A stretch of DNA of 64,000 bases from Thalia democratica (Eukaryota): contig OZ241831.1 in the NCBI GenBank assembly GCA_965202585.1, positions 14,694,001-14,758,000 of the forward strand, read 5' to 3'. Each line of letters opens with the position of its first letter. The stretch's first letter is position 1. A model generated the notes under the pieces. That model was not told the origin of the DNA, ran no database searches, and saw only the letters and a list, made by a program, of their open reading frames with translations. The position numbers and the translations under genes were made by a program. Shown one piece after another: positions 624 to 38,349 of the stretch.

Positions 624-747
624 GCCTACGACCATACCACACTGAACACACCCCATCTCGTCCGATCTGGGAAGTTAAAAAAGTGTCGGGCTTAAAGGTT
701 AGTACTTAGATGGGTGACCGCTTGGGAATACCGCGTGCCGTAGGCTT
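624..747 (+). rRNA. 5S: 5S rRNA-derived gene, variant (possible pseudogene), copy 1
   Basis: GCCTACGACCATACCAC...GTTAGTACTTAGATGGGTGACCGCTTGGGAATAC...GTAGGC followed by TTTT; 124 nt, about 4 nt longer than canonical. Confidence 0.88.
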
Positions 748-939: not shown

Positions 940-3900
940 TTCTGCTCTAGACTTTTAACAAATATAACTTGAAATAAACAGTTGCAGTAGTTTTTAGTTA
1001 TCAAGTTGTCTCATACACAGTCTTCAATAAAGTTACAAAGCTGTTTACTTCTTTTCCTTTGCATAATGTTTCAGCTATTGGTTTTTTTACGCGTTGATGT
1101 TTTATGTTAAAAATCCATAAGCAACTAAGTTTAATAAAACAAGTCTAAGATTTGTAAAAAAAAAATTCAACTTTGCTATTCATGACAGTTGTACTGAAAT
1201 TGAATATTTTTTGGTCGTTTTTTTTCTTTAGAACAATCACTGTTGTTTACATTTATTTATTTTTGAAAATACATTTTGATAAGCATGATCAGTATAATTT
1301 TCATGAATAAACCTCTACTGTTCAAGTATTTTTAAAAATAATACGAAATTTATTAAAACTAACTGTTTTATTTTCATTCCATAATGAAATTACTTTTTAT
1401 AGTGACGTAGAACAAGTTTTAAAAATTAAGTTTAGTATTTACTAAATTAAAAAAAAAGTCTACGAAGTAAGCATAATTGAGAATTTTTTTTTGTCTAAAT
1501 AAAGAAGTTAACAAGAAAAAGCCTTTGGACAACACGTTTAAGTTAGTTGAAGCTTTTTATGAAACATCAAATTACAACTAGTTAACAAAACTTATTCCAC
1601 GATTTAGGCAATACTTTCAAAACATAACTAGCTCTCTTATTAAAAGTTGCTTAGAATGTCCAGTAAAAGTACAAAGGCAATAGTAAGTATGCATAACTAG
1701 GTGACAAAAGAAAAGACAGAAAAAATATTATTTAGAAGTAAAATGGGTCATTCAACTAGCTCTAACTCTTACTTTTGATCTTTACCACCACAAAGTTGGT
1801 TGAGTTGCACATTTTTGTTGTTTAGTTAAAGCTTGTTTAACACTGCTTAGTAGACTTTAAAGCTGGTTAAATAAACTGGTTGTCCTGATTACATTAGATT
1901 AACTTGATAAAGCTATAAGCAATGCTAGATCAACTAAAAGATGTAAGCTTTTTAAAGTTATAGATTCGAAATGTTCTGTTTCGTTCATGTTGTGATGCAT
2001 ATATGTTGTTTTTTGTTTATGTATTTATGAGTTGTAATGCATGTTTTAAATGTGTTTTAGTTAAAGTTATTTTCTGAAACGATACAACATAAATTAGACC
2101 CAAAGCTAAACTAGTTTTCAACTTGATAAATCTGTGAACAATTTGAGTTCAATAAAAAGCTTTGTAAAAAGAATTCGGTTGTAATACATGATGGTTGTTG
2201 TACTGAAATTGCAGTTTTGTTGATTTTTTTATTTTGGTTTGAACAGCTTCTGTTGATTTAAACTGTTTTATTTAGTTTGAGTTGCATTGTAATAAAAAGA
2301 AATAATAAATTTTAGAAACTACTGGTTTATTAGATTGTAATTGTTAATATCCAAAGTTAAGTTTGTTTTATTATAATTTAATGTATTATTTTCATTTAAA
2401 ATCTAATAATTTTTACAGTGACGTAGAACAGCATTTTTTAAATAAACTAAATACTTTTTCAATTTTACAAAAAGAAGTATACAAAATAAGCATAACGGGA
2501 ATAAGTTTTGTTTAAAGAAAGAAGTTTACAAGAAAATCTTATGGACACAAAAATCAAGTTAGTTGAAGCTTTCTGCGAAACGTTTATTTATTTGTAATGT
2601 AACAGACTTAAGCAATGGTTTTTAAATGCAACTAGCTCCCTCCTCAAAAGTAGTTTAAAATGTCATGTAAGAGAACAAAAACAATTGTAAATTCAAGTAT
2701 GTGACAAAAAGTTAAAACACAAAAGTATAAGTTAGAAGTAAACTGTTTTATACAAACATTCTAACTCACCTTTTACCAGCACAAAAAACATTAAGTTTGG
2801 TTCGTTTTTGTCGTCTAGTTAGAGCTTGTTTAATGCTGCTTAGTGGACATTGATATCTGGCTGAATCAGTTGGTGGTCCTTATCACTTTAGACTTATAAC
2901 AGAAATGACTATAGACTGTAAAAGTCGTTTTAAGTCATCAAGTTGTCTCACATATAGTTGTAACAAGTAATACAAATGAGTGGTGACAAGCTGTTACTTC
3001 TTTTCCTTTCAGCTTAAAAATTGAGTTCTTTCATGTATTCGACTAGTTAAGCAATCAAAAACAAACTAAATAGATGTCAGCTTTGTAAAATAAAAGTTTT
3101 AATGATAAGCTTTCATCAACTATTTCAGCTATTTTTGTTTTGGTAAATCGCGTACTTGTTTATAGTGTTGTTTTTCTTTGAACAATCGATGTTGTTTACA
3201 TTTATGTATTTTAATGTATGATTTTTAAATTACTATGCATGTTTTTAATCGTGTTTTAGTTGTAATTAAACTATATTTTTTGTGAAACAAATATTGTTTG
3301 TTGTTAACAATTGAAAACATACTTTGTTGATAAACCAAAGTAAGTTTTATTCTTATTACTATTTAAGTGTACTATTTTCATTGAAAAATATAAATAGTTT
3401 TTAAAGTGACGTAGCGTAACTTTTTTTAATAAGTTAAAAAACAAATAATTATTGAATGTTTAAGAAAAGTGCACAAAGTAAGAACGAATAAGATAGAGTT
3501 CTTAGAAAAAAAAGATATCAAGAAGAAAAAGACATCCAAGTTAGTTAATTATGTTAAGCATTCAATTACAGTAGTTGTTACATCAAGTTGTCTAACACCT
3601 AGTCTAAACAAGTAACTTTACCATGAAAATAATAAAACAAGCATTTTTTAACCGTGTTTAAGCTAATGAGTTGGTTTGTATCATAGGGTGATGTTTTGGC
3701 TTGAAATGATATCTTAAATAAGCTAAATAGATGTCAGCCTTGTAGGTGGGAATACTTAAATGTGTTTGAAATTCACATTTGTTATCTTTTGTTCTGAACT
3801 TTTATTTCTATTTATATACTTATAACTTTTTAAAGCATTTTACATGGTTTTAACTGCATTTAAGTTGATAAAAAGAAGACGTTTAAAAGTTAAACCTTTG

Positions 3901-4312
3901 TTGTGTTGCTGATAATCAACAACAACAACTTAAAAATGTAACAAAAACTAAGGTTTTTTTTGTTATAAGTTAAGTATACGTTACTGTATTATTTTTTTTA
4001 AACACTTATTTACTGAATGTTTTAACAGAAATTCAACAAATGAACAAGAAGTTGTATAGAAAAAAAAAGTTCACGGACAACGTATTGAAGTTAGTTAAAT
4101 CCTTTTTTACATATACTACTGTTTTTTCAAATTAGACTTGAGCAATGGTAACCATAAGATTAAAACTTGAAAGCACGACAAATTTTAAATCAAACAACTA
4201 AGGTGTTTGATCTTTTAATTCTTATAACAACCAGTTTGTTTGTACAATTATCAATTTGTGGCTTGTACTTGAAGTAGATATCAATAGCCGGTTTTGTTCA
4301 AATGGTGGTCCT
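940..4312. repeat. Degenerate ~1-kb tandem modules in spacer 1 (4 modules, third truncated)
   Basis: Recurring AGTGACGTAG (1401, 2417, 3405), AAGTTAGTT (~1540, ~2557, ~3538, ~4088), TGGT(G/T)GTCCT (1877, 2871, 4303); left boundary approximate. Confidence 0.8.
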
Positions 4313-4322
4313 AAAAAGGACC
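4307..4322 (-). terminator. Histone 3' stem-loop of H2B (present in all sets)
   Basis: Minus strand GGTCCT-TTTT-AGGACC followed by ACCA. Confidence 0.95.
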
Positions 4323-4335
4323 GGTTGTTGAGCAT

Positions 4336-4695
4336 TTATTTTGAGCTGGTGTACTTGGTAACAGCTTTAGTTCCCTCTGAAACTGCGTGCTTTGACAACT
4401 CGCCGGGGAGCAAGAGCCTGACAGCAGTTTGAATTTCGCGGCTGCTCACAGTTGACCTCTTGTTGTAATGAGCCAAACGTGAAGCCTCTGCTGCAATGCG
4501 CTCGAAGATGTCGTTGACAAATGAGTTCATGATTCCCATCGCCTTGCTGGAAATTCCGGTGTCGGGGTGCACTTGCTTCAAAACTTTGTACACGTAGATG
4601 CCAAAGCTTTCTTTGTGCCTCCTCCTTCGCTTCTTCTTGCCGTCGACCGGGGTGGTCTTGGCTACTGACTTCTTCGCGCCTTTGGTTGCGGTCAT
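4336..4695 (-). CDS. H2B: Histone H2B, set 1
   Basis: [19 protein letters not shown]...[16 protein letters not shown]; stem-loop downstream. Confidence 0.99.
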
Positions 4696-4755: not shown

Positions 4756-4824
4756 CATTTCCGTACGCGAACGACAGCCTCTCTCATTTTATGATTCTCT
4801 CGTTTGTCGTAAATATTTTTAGGT

Positions 4825-4840
4825 GGTCCTGAAAAGGACC
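4825..4840 (-). terminator. Histone 3' stem-loop of H2A (all sets)
   Basis: Minus strand GGTCCT-TTTC-AGGACC-ACC. Confidence 0.95.
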
Positions 4841-4854
4841 TGGTTTGTTTTAAC

Positions 4855-5325: not shown

Positions 5326-5398
5326 TGTCGTAGCTGCTCTTTAATCTTGTCAAAATGTTTGTTCATCAGTGTTGAAGAAATTTGATTTTGAAATGGGT

Positions 5399-5414
5399 GG
5401 TCCTAAAAAGGACC
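5399..5414 (-). terminator. Histone 3' stem-loop of H4 (all sets)
   Basis: Minus strand GGTCCT-TTTT-AGGACC-ACCC. Confidence 0.95.
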
Positions 5415-5429
5415 GAGTTTGCTAGATGT

Positions 5430-5827: not shown

Positions 5828-5899
5828 CTCAGAAAAGTCTCTAACTTACATTCTTTCGTTTGGTTTATTTTTTCTCACTATCAAACAAAGTTTAAAAGT

Positions 5900-5915
5900 G
5901 GCCCTGAAAAGGACC
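5900..5915 (-). terminator. Histone 3' stem-loop of H3 (all sets)
   Basis: Minus strand GGTCCT-TTTC-AGGGCC-AC (one G:U pair). Confidence 0.93.
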
Positions 5916-5930
5916 GGTTTTAGCTAATGC

Positions 5931-6598
<668 letters not shown>

Positions 6599-6626
6599 TC
6601 ATGTTTTGTTAATATTTTGATTGAGT

Positions 6627-6642
6627 GGTCCTGAAAAGGACC
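6627..6642 (-). terminator. Histone 3' stem-loop of H1 (all sets)
   Basis: Minus strand GGTCCT-TTTC-AGGACC-AC. Confidence 0.93.
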
Positions 6643-6659
6643 TTGGGTAAAAGAACAAC

Positions 6660-28600: not shown

Positions 28601-29042
28601 AAAAGAAGACGTTTAAAAGTTAAACCTTTGTTGTGTTGCTGATAATCAACAACAACAACTTAAAAATGTAACAAAAACTAAGGTTTTTTTTGTTATAAGT
28701 TAAGTATACGTTACTGTATTATTTTTTTTAAACACTTATTTACTGAATGTTTTAACAGAAATTCAACAAATGAACAAGAAGTTGTATAGAAAAAAAAAGT
28801 TCACGGACAACGTATTGAAGTTAGTTAAATCCTTTTTTACATATACTACTGTTTTTTCAAATTAGACTTGAGCAATGGTAACCATAAGATTAAAACTTGA
28901 AAGCACGACAAATTTTAAATCAAACAACTAAGGTGTTTGATCTTTTAATTCTTATAACAACCAGTTTGTTTGTACAATTATCAATTTGTGGCTTGTACTT
29001 GAAGTAGATATCATTAGCCGGTTTTGTTCAAATGGTGGTCCT
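25661..29042. repeat. Degenerate ~1-kb module array, spacer 4
   Basis: Same markers as spacer 1; left boundary approximate. Confidence 0.78.
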
Positions 29043-29065
29043 AAAAAGGACCGGTTGTTGAGCAT

Positions 29066-29404
29066 TTATTTTGAGCTGGTGTACTTGGTAACAGCTTTAG
29101 TTCCCTCTGAAACTGCGTGCTTTGACAACTCGCCGGGGAGCAAGAGCCTGACAGCAGTTTGAATTTCGCGGCTGCTCACAGTTGACCTCTTGTTGTAATG
29201 AGCCAAACGTGAAGCCTCTGCTGCAATGCGCTCGAAGATGTCGTTGACAAATGAGTTCATGATTCCCATCGCCTTGCTGGAAATTCCGGTGTCGGGGTGC
29301 ACTTGCTTCAAAACTTTGTACACGTAGATGCTCCTTCGCTTCTTCTTGCCGTCGACCGGGGTGGTCTTGGCTACTGACTTCTTCGCGCCTTTGGTTGCGG
29401 TCAT
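29066..29404 (-). CDS. H2B: Histone H2B, set 4, with 21-bp in-frame deletion (RRHKESFG replaced by S)
   Basis: 112 aa; junction at 29330/29331 (CACGTAGATG|CTCCTTCGC). Confidence 0.93.
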
Positions 29405-29563
29405 GACGATGTGTGAACTTCAGTCTCGGCGCCAGCTTATATACTGAAAGTTTATGCAAATTTGCATTTCCGTACGCGAACGACAGCCTCTCTCATTTTA
29501 TGATTCTCTCGTTTGTCGTAAATATTTTTAGGTGGTCCTGAAAAGGACCTGGTTTGTTTTAAC

Positions 29564-29944
29564 TTAGGCTGATTTTTTTGAAGCGGTCTTCTTGGGCAAT
29601 AATACTGCCTGGATGTTTGGAAGAACACCTCCTTGAGCAATAGTGACGCCGCCGAGAAGTTTGTTCAACTCTTCGTCGTTGCGGATAGCTAGTTGCAAAT
29701 GGCGGGGAATGATCCTACTTTTCTTGTTGTCACGAGCAGCGTTACCGGCAAGCTCGAGCACTTCTGCGCTCAAATACTCGAGAACGGCAGCCAGATAAAC
29801 TGGAGCACCAGCTCCGACTCTTTGGCTGTAGTTGCCAGTGCGCAACAGGCGGTGCACGCGACCGACTGGAAACTGCAGTCCTGCACGAGAAGACCTGCTC
29901 TTCGGCTTAGATTTGAGTTTTGATCCTTTACCACGTCCCGACAT
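29564..29944 (-). CDS. H2A: Histone H2A, set 4
   Basis: 126 aa, intact. Confidence 0.99.
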
Positions 29945-30138
29945 CTTGTTGTTCGAATGATTGTGCCAAGATGCTCGCACAGCTCTGTATAAAACTCAAA
30001 CCTAACCGCGTCGAACGAACAACTAATTTGCATATGTCGTAGCTGCTCTTTAATCTTGTCAAAATGTTTGTTTAGCAGTGTTGAAGAAATTTGATTTTGA
30101 AATGGGTGGTCCTAAAAAGGACCGAGTTTGCTAAATGT

Positions 30139-30483
<345 letters not shown>

Positions 30484-30639
30484 TTATTTATAAGCTGTTA
30501 CGGACGCGTACGGTTACTACTAAACTAATTTGCATACTCAGAAAAACCTCTAACTTACATTCTTTCGTTTGGTTTATTTTTTCTCACTATCAAACAAAGT
30601 TTAAAAGTGGCCCTGAAAAGGACCGGTTTTAGCTAATGC

Positions 30640-31080
<441 letters not shown>

Positions 31081-31237
31081 CTATATATACTGTTTACGGA
31101 GACACGGACGCAAGCGATTCCGCTGTATCTCATTGACTAATTTGCATACTTTCAATTTACTGTTGTTATTAGCATTTCATGTTTTGTTAATATTTTGATT
31201 GAGTGGTCCTGAAAAGGACCTTGGGTAAAAGAACAAC

Positions 31238-31822
31238 TTATTTTTTACAGCTCTTCTTGGTACTTGCCTTCTTAGATGCTTTTTTGGCTACCGGCTTCTT
31301 CTTGGTTACTTTCTTCTTCTTGCTTGCAGCTTTTTTAGATGCTGCTTTCTTAGGAGCACACTTTTTAGCAGGTCGCTTTTTGGCTGCTGGTTTTTTCGCT
31401 GCCTTCTTGGGAGCACACTTCTTTACTCGTTTCTTTGCTGCGGCCTTCTTTACTGCTGGCTTTTTAGCTACTTTTTTTGTCCTCTTCTTGGGACCAGCAG
31501 CTGGCATTGGAGCAAGCTTGAACGAGCCGGAAGCGCCTTTTCCAGTAGTCTGGAGAAAAGAACCTTTGGCCACGCCGCTGGTAAGTGCTCTCTTCAAGTG
31601 AGAATTAGAAGCTGAGAGGTCAAGCTTGTAGGTGTCCGCGATATATTTTTGTATCTTCTGGCGGGATGTACCTTTTCGTTCCTTCATTGCTCCCAGGGCA
31701 GAGCTAATCATCTCCTTGTAAGTCGGGTGTTCTGCCTTCTTGGCGCTTGGTCTCTTGGAAGACCTGGCCTTGGCTGCGGCCGCCGCTGCTACTGCTGGTG
31801 CTGCTACTGCTGTGGTAGACAT
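31238..31822 (-). CDS. H1: Histone H1, set 4 (mosaic allele)
   Basis: 194 aa with YKEM and GVAKG as in sets 1-3, but YIAD as in sets 5-7. Confidence 0.97.
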   Translation of the reverse strand: MSTTAVAAPAVAAAAAAKARSSKRPSAKKAEHPTYKEMISSALGAMKERKGTSRQKIQKYIADTYKLDLSASNSHLKRALTSGVAKGSFLQTTGKGASGSFKLAPMPAAGPKKRTKKVAKKPAVKKAAAKKRVKKCAPKKAAKKPAAKKRPAKKCAPKKAASKKAASKKKKVTKKKPVAKKASKKASTKKSCKK

Positions 31823-33616
31823 TTTGTATGTATTTTAAAGCAACCGAAACAATACTTTCAGTAGTTACTGACTGTGACGAATTGACTGTTGAGCAGTTTT
31901 ACTTTGTGAAGTACCTTTTACTGATTAATACGAGCATCAGCATGTGAGTTTAAAGCGCATATGCTCATAAAAGCATAGTTATTTTTTTACGAACGTCAAA
32001 AACATTCCAGTGACAAAGAAACCAGACTTAGCCTGGTCGGAAACAGAGTTTTTTTTAAAGCTTAGCTTTAAAAGTCCAGAAAAACAGTCTAAAAGTTACA
32101 GCACACCTCTGCATTTAATGATATAAACCTCAAATGAAACAAAATATATTACTACACATCCGGTTTAGTTTTCTTCAGCTGCAAACTTAAAACTGTAAGA
32201 TTTTAGACAAGCACAAGTATTTTTTTCCACTTCAAGCTTAAGTTAAGTTTTATTATTTTAATTTCATTCGGTTTTGTCAATTGTAAAACCCATGAAGTAT
32301 GTTTAACTTGATTACAACTTTAACTGTGCTGGTTAGTAAAAAGTAATTCATAAACAAACACAAGTATTTAATTTATGATACTTTACAAGTTATCATTACT
32401 TTAAGTATACTTATATTCAAAATGGCAGTACTAAACCACATAAAAAAACTTAAGTAGATAAGTTTTGAATTTGTTCTTCCACATACTAGTAACTTACCTT
32501 TTCAAAAATGTTCTGAACAGTAGCCATACAAAACTTGTTAAAAAGCTAGAAACTAATGTTTAACAAAGTTTGTTATATAAAACAGTCCCAACTAGTTACT
32601 AGTATTTCACAGTTAGAAAAATTTGAAACAACTTTTTAAAACTATTACACAGTTGTTTTGATTTTTTAACAACGTTTTATTTGTTATACTCGAAGCTGAA
32701 CTAAGAACTTTTTCTTTGTAGATTTCATGAAAAGAAAGCGAACAAATGGATTTGATCGTAACTTTCCAAAACAAGACAAAATAACTTACACTTAAATGAA
32801 TATCAGTACTGTTCACTTATGTTCAAAGAAAAGGACCGAAATTTCAATATGAAGTTTAAAAGAGTTGCTTATTTTGAGACGAAAACTTTACTTAAAAAAA
32901 GAGGTTAGGCTAATTTTAAAAGTAACAAAAGTACAGTTCAAAAATGACTGCATAATGATAGAAGTGTTTATGTTTACTAAGTGAAGATTTGTTTAAATAA
33001 ACTTTAATTGATTTACTGCTTAAAGTAGTTTCTAAGTGTAATAAAAACTAGATTCATTACAATGTTCTGCACAATTTAGACAGTTGACTAAATGTTTTGC
33101 TGTGGTATATTTCAAAAAAGGTTGTTAAATCAACTCTAACTTGATATAAATGTAATTTCAAAATGTATTCTTTATTCTCAGGTGTTTTGAGCACTTCTGT
33201 TGTAACAACAGCATTTAAATTTCTAACATGTTAACAATTAGCTAATGTGTTTGTTTGATTTTTGTGTCTTTTCCTTTTAAAACAGGGTATTTACTTATTT
33301 GAAAACTGTACGTTGCTTTTGCACTCGTACTATCATAGCTGAACAGTTTTACGAAGCTTACTTTGAAGCAAATAAAAAAAAAGAATAAGTAAAGGCAAGA
33401 CAAACTTAAATTATTTGTTAGTTAGAACAAAGTGAGCTCTAAACATAAGAAACACTTAAGCAAATAAGCTACAAGTTTTTAAAAACATTTTTAAATTTTT
33501 CAATAATAAATGACACACTAACTAGACTGTCATTTAGTTGTAGACTTATTTTGTCTGTTGCTTTCATTTTGCTATTTACATAAAAGCCATAACTTTATTT
33601 TTTATAAGCGTTTCGT

Positions 33617-36600
33617 TCTGCTCTAGACTTTTAACAAATATAACTTGAAATAAACAGTTGCAGTAGTTTTTAGTTATCAAGTTGTCTCATACACAGTCTT
33701 CAATAAAGTTACTAAGCTGTTTACTTCTTTTCCTTTGCATAATGTTTCAGCTATTGGTTTTTTTACGCGTTGATGTTTTATGTTAAAAATCCATAAGCAA
33801 CTAAGTTTAATAAAACAAGTCTAAGATTTGTAAAAAAAAAACAGTTGTACTGAAATTGAATGCTTTTTGGTCGTTTTTTTTCTTTAGAACAATCACTGTT
33901 GTTTACATTTATTTATTTTTAAAAATACATTTTGATAAGCATGATCAGTATAATTTTCATGAATAAACCTCTACTGTTCAAGTATTTTAAAAAATAATAC
34001 GAAATTTATTAAAACTAACTGTTTTATTTTCATTCCATAATGAAATTGCTTTTTATAGTGACGTAGAACAAGTTTTAAAAACTAAGTTTAGTATTTATTA
34101 AATTAAAAAAAAAGTCTACGAAGTAAGCACAATTGAGAATTTTTTTGTCTAAATAAAGAAGTTAACAAGAAAAAGCCTTTGGACAACACGTTGAAGTTAG
34201 TTGAAGCTTTTTATGAAACATCAAATTACAACTAGTTAACAAAACTTATTCCACGATTTAGGCAATACTTTCAAAACATAACTAGCTCTCTTATTAAAAG
34301 TTGCTTAGAATGTCCAGTAAAAGTACAAAGGCAATAGTAAGTATGCATAACTAGGTGACAAAAGAAAAGACAGAAAAAATATTAATTAGAAGTAAAATGT
34401 GTCATTCAACTAGCTCTAACTCTTACTTTTGATCTTTTACCACCACAAAGTTGGTTGAGTTGCACATTTTTGTTGTTTAGTTAAAGCTTGTTTAACACTG
34501 CTTAGTAGACTTTAAAGCTGGTTAAATAAACTGGTTGTCCTGATTACATTAGATTAACTTGATAAAGCTATAAGCAATGCTAGATCAACTAAAAGCTTTT
34601 TAAAGTTGTAGATTCGAAATGTTCTTTTTTGTTCATGTTGTAATGCATATATGTTGTTTTTTGTTTATGTATTTATGAGTTGTAATGCATGTTTTTTAGT
34701 TAAAGTTTTTTTCTGAAACGATACAACATAAATTAGACCCAAAGCTAAACTAATTTTCAACTTGATAAATCTGTGAACAATTTGAGTTCAATAAAAAGCT
34801 TTGTAAAAATAATTCGGTTGTAATACATGATGGTTGTTGTACTGAAATTGCAGTTTTGTTGATTTTTTTATTTTGGTTTGAACAGCTTCTGTTGTTAACT
34901 GTATTTTAAACTGTTTTATTTAGTTTGAGTTGCATTGTAATAAAAAAAAATAATACATTTTAGAAACTACTGGTTTATTAGATTGTAATTGTTAATATCC
35001 AAAGTTAATTTTGTTTTATTATAATTTAATGTATTATTTTCATTTAAAATCTAATACTTTTTACAGTGACGTAGAACAGTATTTTTTAAATAAACTAAAT
35101 ACTTTTTCAATTTTACAAAAAGAAGTATACAAAATAAGCATAACGGGAATAAGTTTTGTTTAAAGAAAGAAGTTTACAAGAAAATCTTATGGACACAAAA
35201 ATCAAGTTAGTTGAAGCTTTCTGCGAAACGTATATTTATTTGTAATGTAACAGACTTAAGCAATGGTTTTTAAATGCAACTAGCTCCCTCCTCAAAAGTA
35301 GTTTAAAATGTCATGTAAGAGCAATTGTAAATACAAGTATGTGACAAAAAGTTAAAACACAAAAGTATAAGCTAGAAGTAAACTGTTTTATACAAACGTT
35401 CTAACTCACCTTTTACCAGCACAAAAAACATTAAGTTTGGTTCGTTTTTGTCGTCTAGTTAGAGCTTGTTTATTGCTGCTTAGTGGACATTGATATCTGG
35501 TTGAATCAGTTGGTGGTCCTTATCACTTTAGACTTATAACAGAAATAACTATAGACTGTAAAAGTCGTTTTAAGTCATCAAGTTGTCTCACATATAGTTG
35601 TAACAAGTAATACAAATGAGTGGTGACAAGCTGTTACTTCTTTTCCTTTCAGCTTATAAATTGAGTTCTTTCATGTATTCGACTAGTTAAGCAACCAAAA
35701 ACAAACTAAATAGATGTCAGCTTTGTAAAATAAAAGTTTTAATGATAAGCTTTCATGAATTATTTCAGCTATTTTTGTTTTGGTAAATCGCGTACTTGTT
35801 TATAGTGTTGTTTTTCTTTGAACAATCGATGTTGTTTACATTTATGTATTTTAATGTATGATTTTTAAGTTACTATGCATGTTTTTAATCGTGTTTTAGT
35901 TGTAATTAAACTATATTTTTTGTGAAACAAATATTGTTTGTTGTTAACAATTGAAAACATACTTTGTTGATAAACCAAAGCAAGTTTTATTCTTATTACT
36001 ATTTAAGTGTACTATTTTCATTGAAAAATATAACTAGTTTTTAAAGTGACGTAGCGTAACTTTTTTTAATAAGTTAAAAAACAAATAATTAATGAATGTT
36101 TAAGAAAAGTCCACAAAGTAAGAACGAATAAGATAGAAAAAAAAGATATCAAGAAGAAAAAGACATCCAAGTTAGTTAATTATGTTAAGCATTCAATTAC
36201 AGTAGGCAATAAATTAAGGATTATAGCAGTGATCACACTAGTTTACATCGCAAAAGTTAGATCAAAAATAAAGTAAAAGTAGAGAAATCACAGCAAGCTT
36301 AACTGTTCAATTAATAATGGAAAGCGATAAAATATAGTTTGGAAGTAAACAGTGTTATTCAGAGTTCTTTGATCCTTTATCATCACAAAGTAGATTTAGT
36401 ATGTAAATTTGTGTCATTGAGTTTAGTACACATTAGAAGCTTGCATCAATGACTGGTGATCCACGTAAGCTTTAGACTCATGGAAAATACAAAAAAAAAA
36501 CAAATGATTTTTGGATTTGTCTCATATACAGTATAAAAAAGAGATCAAGTTGTTCATTTTTTCTTTTGTATCATGTTTTTATGTGTCGACGTTTTTGTTT

Positions 36601-37966
36601 GATAGAGCCACAAACAATTTGAGTTCAACGAAACAAGTTTAAATATTTGTAAATATTTCAACTGTACTCTTAAACTATTGTTGTACTGAAACTGTATGTT
36701 TGTTTTGAACAGTCGCTGTTGTATACATTAATGCATTGTACAACTTTCAATCTGCTTTTTATGGTTTCAGTTGCATTCTAACTAACAAGACTAGTATACT
36801 TTAAAAAATTAAACCTCAGTTTAATTGTAATCTTTGACTAAGTGTTTTTGATATCAATACAAATTCAAGTTTTCTTCTCATTATAATCAACTGAAATTTG
36901 AATTTGAAAATTTAACTAATTTTTTCAGTGACATGGTATTATTTTAGATTTTTCATAAATAAAACTTATTTTGATATTAAAAATAACATTGACTGTTTGA
37001 AAAACTTGTCCACAAAGTAAGCATGAACAAGAATAAATTTTGTTTAATATACCTATTGTAAAACATTTTTACCTAACATTCAAATACTAGTAAGAAAGGA
37101 AAACAGATAAATATTATCATTTAGAAGTAAAATGTTTAGATACATTAGTAACTGGTTAAATCAGTTGGTGGTCCTGATTATTTTAGATTTATAACAAACA
37201 TAACTTAGAACAAACAATTAGAGTTACTTTAGGTCATCAAGTTGTCTAACACCTAGTCTAAACAAGTAACTTTACCATGAAAATAATAAAACTAGCATTT
37301 TTTAACCGTGTTTAAGCTAATGAATTGGTTTGTATCATAGGGTGATGTTTTGGCTTGAAATGATATCTTAAATAAGCTAAATAGATGTCAGCCTTGTAGG
37401 TGGGAATACTTAAATGTGTTTGAAATTGACATTTGTTATCTTTTGTTCTGAACTTTTATTTCTATTTATATACTTATAACTTTTTAAAACATTTTACATG
37501 GTTTTAACTGCATTTAAGTTGATAAAAAGAAGACGTTTAAAAGTTAAACCTTTGTTGTGTTGCTGATAATCAACAACAACAACTTAAAAATGTAACAAAA
37601 ACTAAGGTTTTTTTTGTTATAAGTTGAGTATACGTTACTGTATTATCTTTTTTTAAACACTTATTTACTGAATGTTTTAACAGAAATTCAACAAATGAAC
37701 AAGAAGTTGTATAGAAAAAAAAGTTCACGGACAACGTATTGAAGTTAGTTAAATCCTTTTTTACAGATACTACTGTTTTTTCAAATTAGACTTATGCAAT
37801 GGTAACCATAAGATTAAAACTTAAAAGTACGACAAATTTTAAATCAAACAACTAAAGTGTTTGATCTTTTAATTCTTATAACAACCAGTTTGTTTGTACA
37901 ATTATCAATTTGTGGCTTGTACTTTAAGTAGATATCAATAGCCGGTTTGGTTCAAATGGTGGTCCT
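33617..37966. repeat. Extended module array (5 modules) in the 5S-less spacer
   Basis: Standard modules plus extra segment 36206-37234 that carries module markers. Confidence 0.78.
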
Positions 37967-37989
37967 AAAAAGGACCGGTTGTTGAGCAT

Positions 37990-38349
37990 TTATTTTGAGC
38001 TGGTGTACTTGGTGACAGCTTTAGTTCCCTCTGAAACTGCGTGCTTTGACAACTCGCCGGGGAGCAAGAGCCTGACAGCAGTTTGAATTTCGCGGCTGCT
38101 CACAGTTGACCTCTTGTTGTAATGAGCCAAACGTGAAGCCTCTGCTGCAATGCGCTCGAAGATGTCGTTGACAAATGAGTTCATGATTCCCATCGCCTTG
38201 CTGGAAATTCCGGTGTCGGGGTGCACTTGCTTCAAAACTTTGTACACGTAGATGCCAAAGCTTTCTTTGTGCCTCCTCCTTCGCTTCTTCTTGCCGTCGA
38301 CCGGGGTGGTCTTGGCTACTGACTTCTTCGCGCCTTTGGTTGCGGTCAT
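37990..38349 (-). CDS. H2B: Histone H2B, set 5
   Basis: 119 aa, intact. Confidence 0.99.

Follow-up and report, generated by a model that had tools for sequence, protein, structure and literature searches.

Organization of the histone locus

The window analysed here, a stretch of 64,000 nucleotides of Thalia democratica contig C7 (OZ241831.1, positions 14,694,001 to 14,758,000), contains seven and a half tandem histone repeat units. The gene order per unit is H1, H3, H4, H2A and H2B, all on the minus strand according to the list of open reading frames; a 5S rRNA gene copy, which some units and arrays lack, is encoded on the plus strand. The co-oriented H1-H3-H4-H2A-H2B train ends with H2B.

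The H2B coding sequence (4336-4695, minus strand, from the same list) is followed by its real 3' end signal (4303-4322, minus strand), which consists of a 6-bp stem with a 4-nt loop (4307-4322) and the cleavage-site ACCA (4303-4306). This signal matches the Rfam histone stem-loop model RF00032 with 31.7 bits (E 3.5e-6) and folds. The nearest 5S rRNA gene copy (624-746, plus strand; Rfam RF00001, 84 bits) is convergent with the histone genes. The spacer studied here comprises the 3.6 kb between the H2B stem-loop and this 5S copy and has a G+C content of about 26%.

The spacer is a tandem array of diverged modules

Positions 945-4312 form a diverged head-to-tail array of modules of about 1 kb, which has the 5S copy at its left border, outside the array itself, and ends in the true H2B 3' flank. 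Shared 7-mers are in excess on the diagonals at offsets 1000 (z=13) and 1925 (z=9.7). Comparison of the spacer with itself by blastn yields significant module-to-module alignments in direct orientation, of 1111-2534 with 2128-3524 (E 6e-95) and of 945-1597 with 2886-3604 (E 5e-24); inverted self-matches were absent from the blastn comparison of the spacer, all matches lying on the same strand. The modules thus have the properties of spacer subrepeats, being arranged head to tail on one strand with colinear homology beyond chance. The initial annotation of this DNA had listed a series of ordered markers recurring at a period of about 1 kb; all of them were found at the places given, and the period itself is borne out by the diagonal excess and the self-matches.

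Of the four modules in this spacer, two are full copies and two are truncated. M1 (945-1886, plus strand), delimited by the self-matches and the module alignment, is full length at 942 bp. M2 (1887-2880, plus strand; 994 bp), also delimited by self-matches, has a deletion in its head relative to the array on contig C8. M3 (2881-3574, plus strand) is truncated after about 690 bp by a 1029-bp deletion. M4 (3575-4312, plus strand), assigned by a profile match and an anchored test of its tail, is the true H2B 3' flank and lacks its first 60 bp or so in the 8.2-kb units. An array of the ancestral type, with five modules (33600-37966, plus strand; module ends at 34541, 35520, 36462, 37175 and 37966), is kept in the single long unit of the window (29033-37956).

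TRF detected no long-period array in the spacer, since the module copies are too diverged and their period is above its limit. A possible remnant of a sixth module to the left of M1 was looked for, but the module profile found no homology in 747-960, between 5S and M1, and none in the spacer between H1 and 5S. A dispersed repeat or transposable element was rejected, as no copies beyond the host array were found among the scored matches. Among the best 40 candidates scored per search, no module copy lies outside histone arrays, all scored matches falling in the histone arrays on C7, C8, C10 and C167.

Module joints carry half of the H2B stem-loop

When one mismatch is allowed, the window contains 41 copies of the word TGGTGGTCCT, where chance predicts 1.0. 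Every copy is on the plus strand, and such matches are confined to module ends and real hairpins. Read on the histone strand, the joints carry AGGACC-ACCA, which is the complete 3' arm of the stem-loop with the cleavage-site tetranucleotide. At all joints TGGTGGTCCT is followed by a common head resembling GATTACTTTAGA. The half stem-loop at the M1/M2 joint (1877-1886, plus strand) reads TGGTTGTCCT, that is AGGACAACCA on the histone strand, with one arm base changed. That at the M2/M3 joint (2871-2880, plus strand) reads TGGTGGTCCT, with the 3' arm and ACCA intact, and is identical in the C8 array. The two half sites that had been reported from the long spacer, TGGTGATCC at 36454 and TGGTGGTCCT at 37166, are both present. 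A small AATCA/TGATT inverted repeat surrounds the half site at M3b joints only, M3b being the module between M3 and M4 in five-module units.

It had also been proposed that the last module runs directly into the real H2B hairpin, colinear with the half sites, and that the spacer was built by multiplying the region downstream of H2B. Both statements hold. From the three arrays, 10 internal modules were used to build a profile, with the half hairpin left out. It matches the M4 module of each array over 580-710 nt, starting at position 3-6, with E values of 6e-30 to 2e-46; none of the shuffled sequences reaches E 1. In an anchored global test, which compared the observed resemblance with that of random spacer 45-mers or shuffles, the 45 nt beside the real hairpin and those beside the half hairpins resemble each other, with P values of 0.004, 0.02 and <0.001 for the three arrays. 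In a MAFFT alignment of 13 modules, a shared tail, TAGTAGACATTAGTAGCTGGTT..AATCAA, leads into TGGTGGTCCT in every one of them. Past TGGTGGTCCT, M4 goes on into the loop and 5' arm of the stem-loop and the other modules into the head of the next module. The half sites are thus colinear with the H2B hairpin, and homology with the real site ends at the first loop base, which places the right-hand breakpoint where the loop meets the 3' arm.

Over its last 200 nt or so the true flank has diverged too far to be matched by a profile that is not anchored, and an unanchored local profile search with the last 70 columns did not match it. Taken by itself, the pairwise similarity between the last 120 nt of M4 and the other tails lacks significance (z 1-2). 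Local alignment in pairs of the tail of the true flank with the other tails is marginal (z 1-3.7), and an ungapped position matrix for the tail failed owing to a 1-nt indel. Because the pairwise and local profile tests are weak, homology of the tail rests on the anchored test together with colinearity.

Age and copy number of the modules

Three arrays of this one genome were compared: that of the window, that on C8, with units of 8.8-9.8 kb, and a 7.2-kb type, which occurs on C10 and C167 as well as at 31.4 Mb of C7. Units of this last type retain just M3, M3b and M4, and a search for 5S genes gave no match in its arrays. A tree of 13 modules has one clade per module position, and the arrays branch in the same (A,B),C order within each clade. 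Mean identity is 0.75 between orthologous modules, 0.62 between paralogous modules and 0.56 between M4 and the others. As the modules cluster by position and not by array, the five-module array is older than the split of the arrays. Spacer identity between arrays A and B is 74-78%, and that of the unrelated H1-5S spacer is 73%; the copies drift at the rate of the remaining spacer. M4, the copy at the gene-side edge, is the most diverged, as expected under unequal exchange.

Copy number varies, with 5, 4 or 3 modules per unit. The 1029 bp absent from the 8.2-kb units correspond to 36206-37234 (plus strand) of the long unit and comprise the rest of M3, the whole of M3b and the first 60 bp or so of M4. 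The deletion is not in register, since it joins M3, at about position 690, to M4, at about position 60, and its junction lies at a short shared word, TTACAGTAG. At least 12 five-module units and at least 17 units with the deletion are present in the C7 array. The loss in the 8.2-kb units is later than the five-module stage.

Two conserved islands in the modules

The best conserved motif of the modules is AAGTTAGTT (1540-1548, plus strand; also at 2556, 3538 and 4088). It has undergone zero parsimony steps in the 10 modules of the three arrays that carry it, against a 95th percentile of 4 for the longest run after permutation. A second island, AGTGACGTAG (1401-1410, plus strand; also at 2417 and 3405), lies about 135 nt before the first and shows 4 steps in 10 columns. 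Both islands are above the column-permutation threshold. The two occur once each per module, in fixed order, at a spacing of about 135 nt and on the plus strand only, with two exceptions: in every array, AAGTTAGTT is missing from M3b and AGTGACGTAG from M4. Genome-wide, the island pair is nearly confined to histone arrays (217 matches versus 2 for the control). Both islands are significantly constrained and are candidate protein-binding sites, protein binding being the simplest guess as to their role.

One alternative to a purely relic array is that the modules have been kept for these repeated binding sites, which might serve as enhancers, as insulators or in nucleation of the locus body, with the half hairpin incidental. 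This proposal concerns present function and is compatible with an origin by duplication. The conservation of the islands, their constant arrangement and their near restriction to histone arrays all speak for it, and so does a precedent from another histone repeat: in the sea urchin, the 3' end of the alpha-H2A gene carries the sns5 insulator (PMC2794192). The present modules resemble sns5 in that a possible functional element lies in the 3' flank of a histone gene within a tandem repeat, a likeness of position; they differ from it in that here a function would be suggested by two short conserved islands. Against the proposal stand the modules that lack one or the other island in every array, the drift of most of each module at the spacer rate, and the variation from 3 to 5 modules with no visible consequence. 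We therefore regard retention for binding sites as possible but rather doubtful.

Conservation and decay of the half stem-loops

At the internal joints of the three arrays (n=10), AGGACC and ACCA are exact in 4, carry one or two changes in 5, and have lost the arm in 1, the M1 joint of the C8 array, through a short deletion. A G-to-T change in the arm is found at 2 of the 10 joints, and three M3 joints read TGGTGATCCA or TGGTGGTGCA. The RF00032 model, run at E up to 10, matched none of the half sites; it matched only the five real hairpins, with 22-33 bits, all slightly below the gathering score of 34 bits. RNA folds of three joints were no better than those of shuffled sequences (z about 0); in the real H2B site the 6-bp stem does form. 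The half sites form no hairpin because the 5' arm and the loop are absent.

The initial annotation raised the question of whether the half-hairpin column is more conserved than its neighbours. Its conservation is above average, but not significantly so. The half-site 10-mer shows 8 parsimony steps per 10 columns compared with a mean of 15.5, a comparison to be read with the fact that the motif was noticed for being recognisable, which biases any conservation test towards it. It ranks 61-97 among 1046 windows, within the best 6-9% of 10-mers, which is below the column-permutation threshold. The 10-mer is G+C-rich, and G/C columns of the spacer change faster (1.96 versus 1.43 steps per column); compared with composition-matched columns it is better conserved (P 0.007). 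Tree-corrected windows of 30-70 nt centred on the joint change at the average rate. A measure based on the fraction of agreeing sequences had singled out a joint region of about 70 nt as the best conserved block, and this was ruled out by the tree-corrected counts, which are average there.

A box resembling AACCAGCT lies 12-20 nt downstream of ACCA in the real H2B flank and in most modules. The other four histone genes do not have this box, which is therefore not evidently a U7-binding element common to them all. A search for U7 snRNA gave no match, and the control genomes were silent too.

Half hairpins and box together might act as a fail-safe for polymerase II read-through, by processing, pausing or termination, protecting the convergent 5S gene or the next unit. 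Such a role would suit the orientation of the half sites, all of which are on the histone strand, and their placement between the end of the gene train and the convergent 5S copy. It would also suit the slower change of the 10-mer, at about half the average rate, and the presence of the box in the real H2B flank. Against it stand the lack of a stem, of any Rfam match at E 10 and of a stable fold, the change or loss of the arm in 6 of 10 sites, and a conservation that is not significant after correction for multiple windows, in a joint region that is itself average. The box is absent from the other four histone genes, and the 7.2-kb arrays retain modules though no 5S gene was found there. We consider this role very unlikely. 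The 10-mer could be under some constraint, yet the evidence from the sequence does not favour a function for the half hairpins themselves, and we read the half hairpin as a slowly decaying scar of one ancient duplication.

Origin of the spacer

The initial annotation further suggested that the hairpin or processing site may be a recombination hotspot, in which case the joints would stem from several independent breaks in the loop. The exact position of the breakpoint at the arm/loop boundary is in line with this, and short inverted repeats can stall replication. A 6-bp stem, however, is very short for breakage of the cruciform type. The joints have the same sequence on both sides, with a shared head throughout, the modules belong to one tree, arranged by position and older than the array split, and no module begins from the hairpin of another histone gene. 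Since all joints share the head, one breakpoint spread by unequal exchange suffices and a hotspot is not needed, which makes repeated breakage highly improbable. Stalling at a small inverted repeat would be consistent with a break exactly at the arm/loop boundary, as far as a single event allows such a reading.

A reading of the modules as remnants of protein-coding units, or of H2B genes, on the histone strand can be dismissed: mismatches show a slight excess of autocorrelation at lags 3, 6 and 9, but this is outweighed by stops making up 7-8% of codons in all six frames, a longest open stretch of 71 codons, multiples of three in just 15 of 87 between-array indels, and DNA similarity to the H2B gene region that is never above shuffles in a consistent position. 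A superficial likeness of the module head to the H2B stop-codon region, seen in one MAFFT alignment, was also rejected, as there is no significant similarity to the H2B gene.

We thus favour an origin in which the spacer from 5S to H2B is a relic tandem array and its half sites are scars, an explanation that, taken as a whole, we hold to be probable. The founding event would have been one old tandem duplication of about 0.9-1.0 kb directly downstream of H2B. Its gene-side breakpoint would have fallen in the H2B stem-loop, where the loop meets the 3' arm, and therefore each new joint would consist of the 3' arm and ACCA followed by the head of the next copy. From this single junction, unequal exchange would have produced five copies ahead of the separation of the histone arrays. 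Afterwards the copies drifted at the spacer rate, with continued change in copy number: the 8.2-kb units lost 1029 bp between M3 and M4 at the shared TTACAGTAG, and the 7.2-kb arrays retain only three modules. The half stem-loops would be scars and probably neutral; they are decaying and unable to form the hairpin required by the stem-loop binding protein.

Comparison with known repeats

Subrepeats of rDNA intergenic spacers duplicate signals that flank genes; examples are the spacer promoters and 60/81-bp repeats of Xenopus, the 240-bp repeats of Drosophila and the Sal-box terminator repeats of the mouse. Repeated promoters, enhancers and terminators of rDNA are known to work. Like rDNA subrepeats, the modules form a tandem array within a larger one, in the spacer of a tandemly repeated gene unit, and the array derives from gene-adjacent sequence in the same orientation; its copy number varies between units, and its edge copy is the most diverged. 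Unlike them, it is hosted by a histone array, the 3' end signal that was copied is halved and cannot fold, and the modules are about 1 kb long and old, with about 60% identity.

The 3' end signal described by RF00032 is bound by SLBP and U7 snRNP. The half sites share with it the 3' arm AGGACC and ACCA in the same orientation, and with the real H2B signal the sequence that follows, which is homologous to the real downstream flank. They differ from the signal in having neither 5' arm nor loop and no match to the model, and in that mutations have accumulated in several copies.

A 2026 review of histone gene organisation (PMC13525598) cites the 240-bp repeats of Drosophila and also describes histone repeats linked to 5S rRNA genes in Artemia and Mytilus. 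As in those two, the T. democratica locus has a five-gene histone unit, tandemly repeated, with a 5S gene in the spacer; here, by contrast, the 5S gene is outside the module array and is missing from some units and arrays. A term search of the text of that review returned no mention of spacer subrepeats, and a full-text literature search for spacer subrepeats in histone repeats retrieved nothing relevant.

Implications for histone spacers

The results show how a long, seemingly featureless histone spacer may arise, by one duplication that halved the H2B stem-loop, followed by unequal exchange. The five modules are older than the split of at least three arrays and so provide a dated internal marker by which concerted evolution, unit turnover and array dispersal can be traced in this genome. 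The half hairpin, a scar still recognisable but in decay, can be told apart from two short motifs that are truly constrained and are better experimental targets. A more active role is conceivable, in which the modules are not inert: the islands, and perhaps the remnant of arm and ACCA with its box, might serve as repeated cis elements of the histone locus, either binding factors that organise the locus body or stopping read-through polymerase after H2B, as a histone counterpart of the working rDNA repeats. We think this unlikely. Should the modules prove to influence transcription, histone arrays would have their own analogue of the spacer repeats of rDNA.

Conserved motifs in the spacer modules

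Two motifs recur within the modules, the diverged subrepeats of about 1 kb that lie in tandem in the spacer behind H2B. AAGTTAGTT is found at window positions 1540, 2556, 3538 and 4088, and AGTGACGTAG at 1401, 2417 and 3405, the spacing from AGTGACGTAG to AAGTTAGTT being approximately 135 nt. Both are unchanged, or almost so, between modules whose sequences elsewhere show about 60% identity, and this holds in three arrays (the window array on contig C7, the paralogous array on C8, and the 7.2-kb type). Genome-wide, the pair is nearly confined to histone arrays.

When window positions 33335-38000 were compared with the C8 spacer, the mismatch autocorrelation was 0.055-0.074 at lags 3, 6 and 9 and slightly lower (0.026-0.047) at lags 4, 5, 7 and 8; no further coding signal accompanied this excess.

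Histone stem-loops

The five real histone stem-loops (window 4282-4327, 4800-4845, 5375-5419, 5876-5920 and 6601-6647) all score 22-33 bits against Rfam, slightly below the gathering threshold of 34; thus, a default Rfam scan lists none of them. The H3 stem contains a G-U pair. In one unit of the C8 array (L014:5887-5906) the real H2B hairpin reads TGGTGGTGCT, which breaks a stem pair, and in one unit of L018, another stretch of the genome, the H3 hairpin loop is altered (GAATAGG).

Variation among histone units

H3 of the first unit is split by an insertion of about 122 bp (window 6117-6238) that breaks its reading frame and accounts for the unit length of 8330 bp. A 9-bp direct duplication (GTCTTGAGC) stands on both sides, and the insertion looks like that of a small mobile element. 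No 5S copy is present in the long unit, where 16 bp stand in place of 239 bp (window 33479-33494). The H2B of this unit (window 29066-29404) carries a 21-bp in-frame deletion that leaves 112 amino acids and removes part of the basic N-terminal region.

The 7.2-kb histone units contain three modules, and no 5S copy was detected in them. Large arrays of this unit type occur on three or more contigs (C7 at 31.36 Mb, locus L017; C10 at 25.74-26.06 Mb; and C167), and they are 98% alike.
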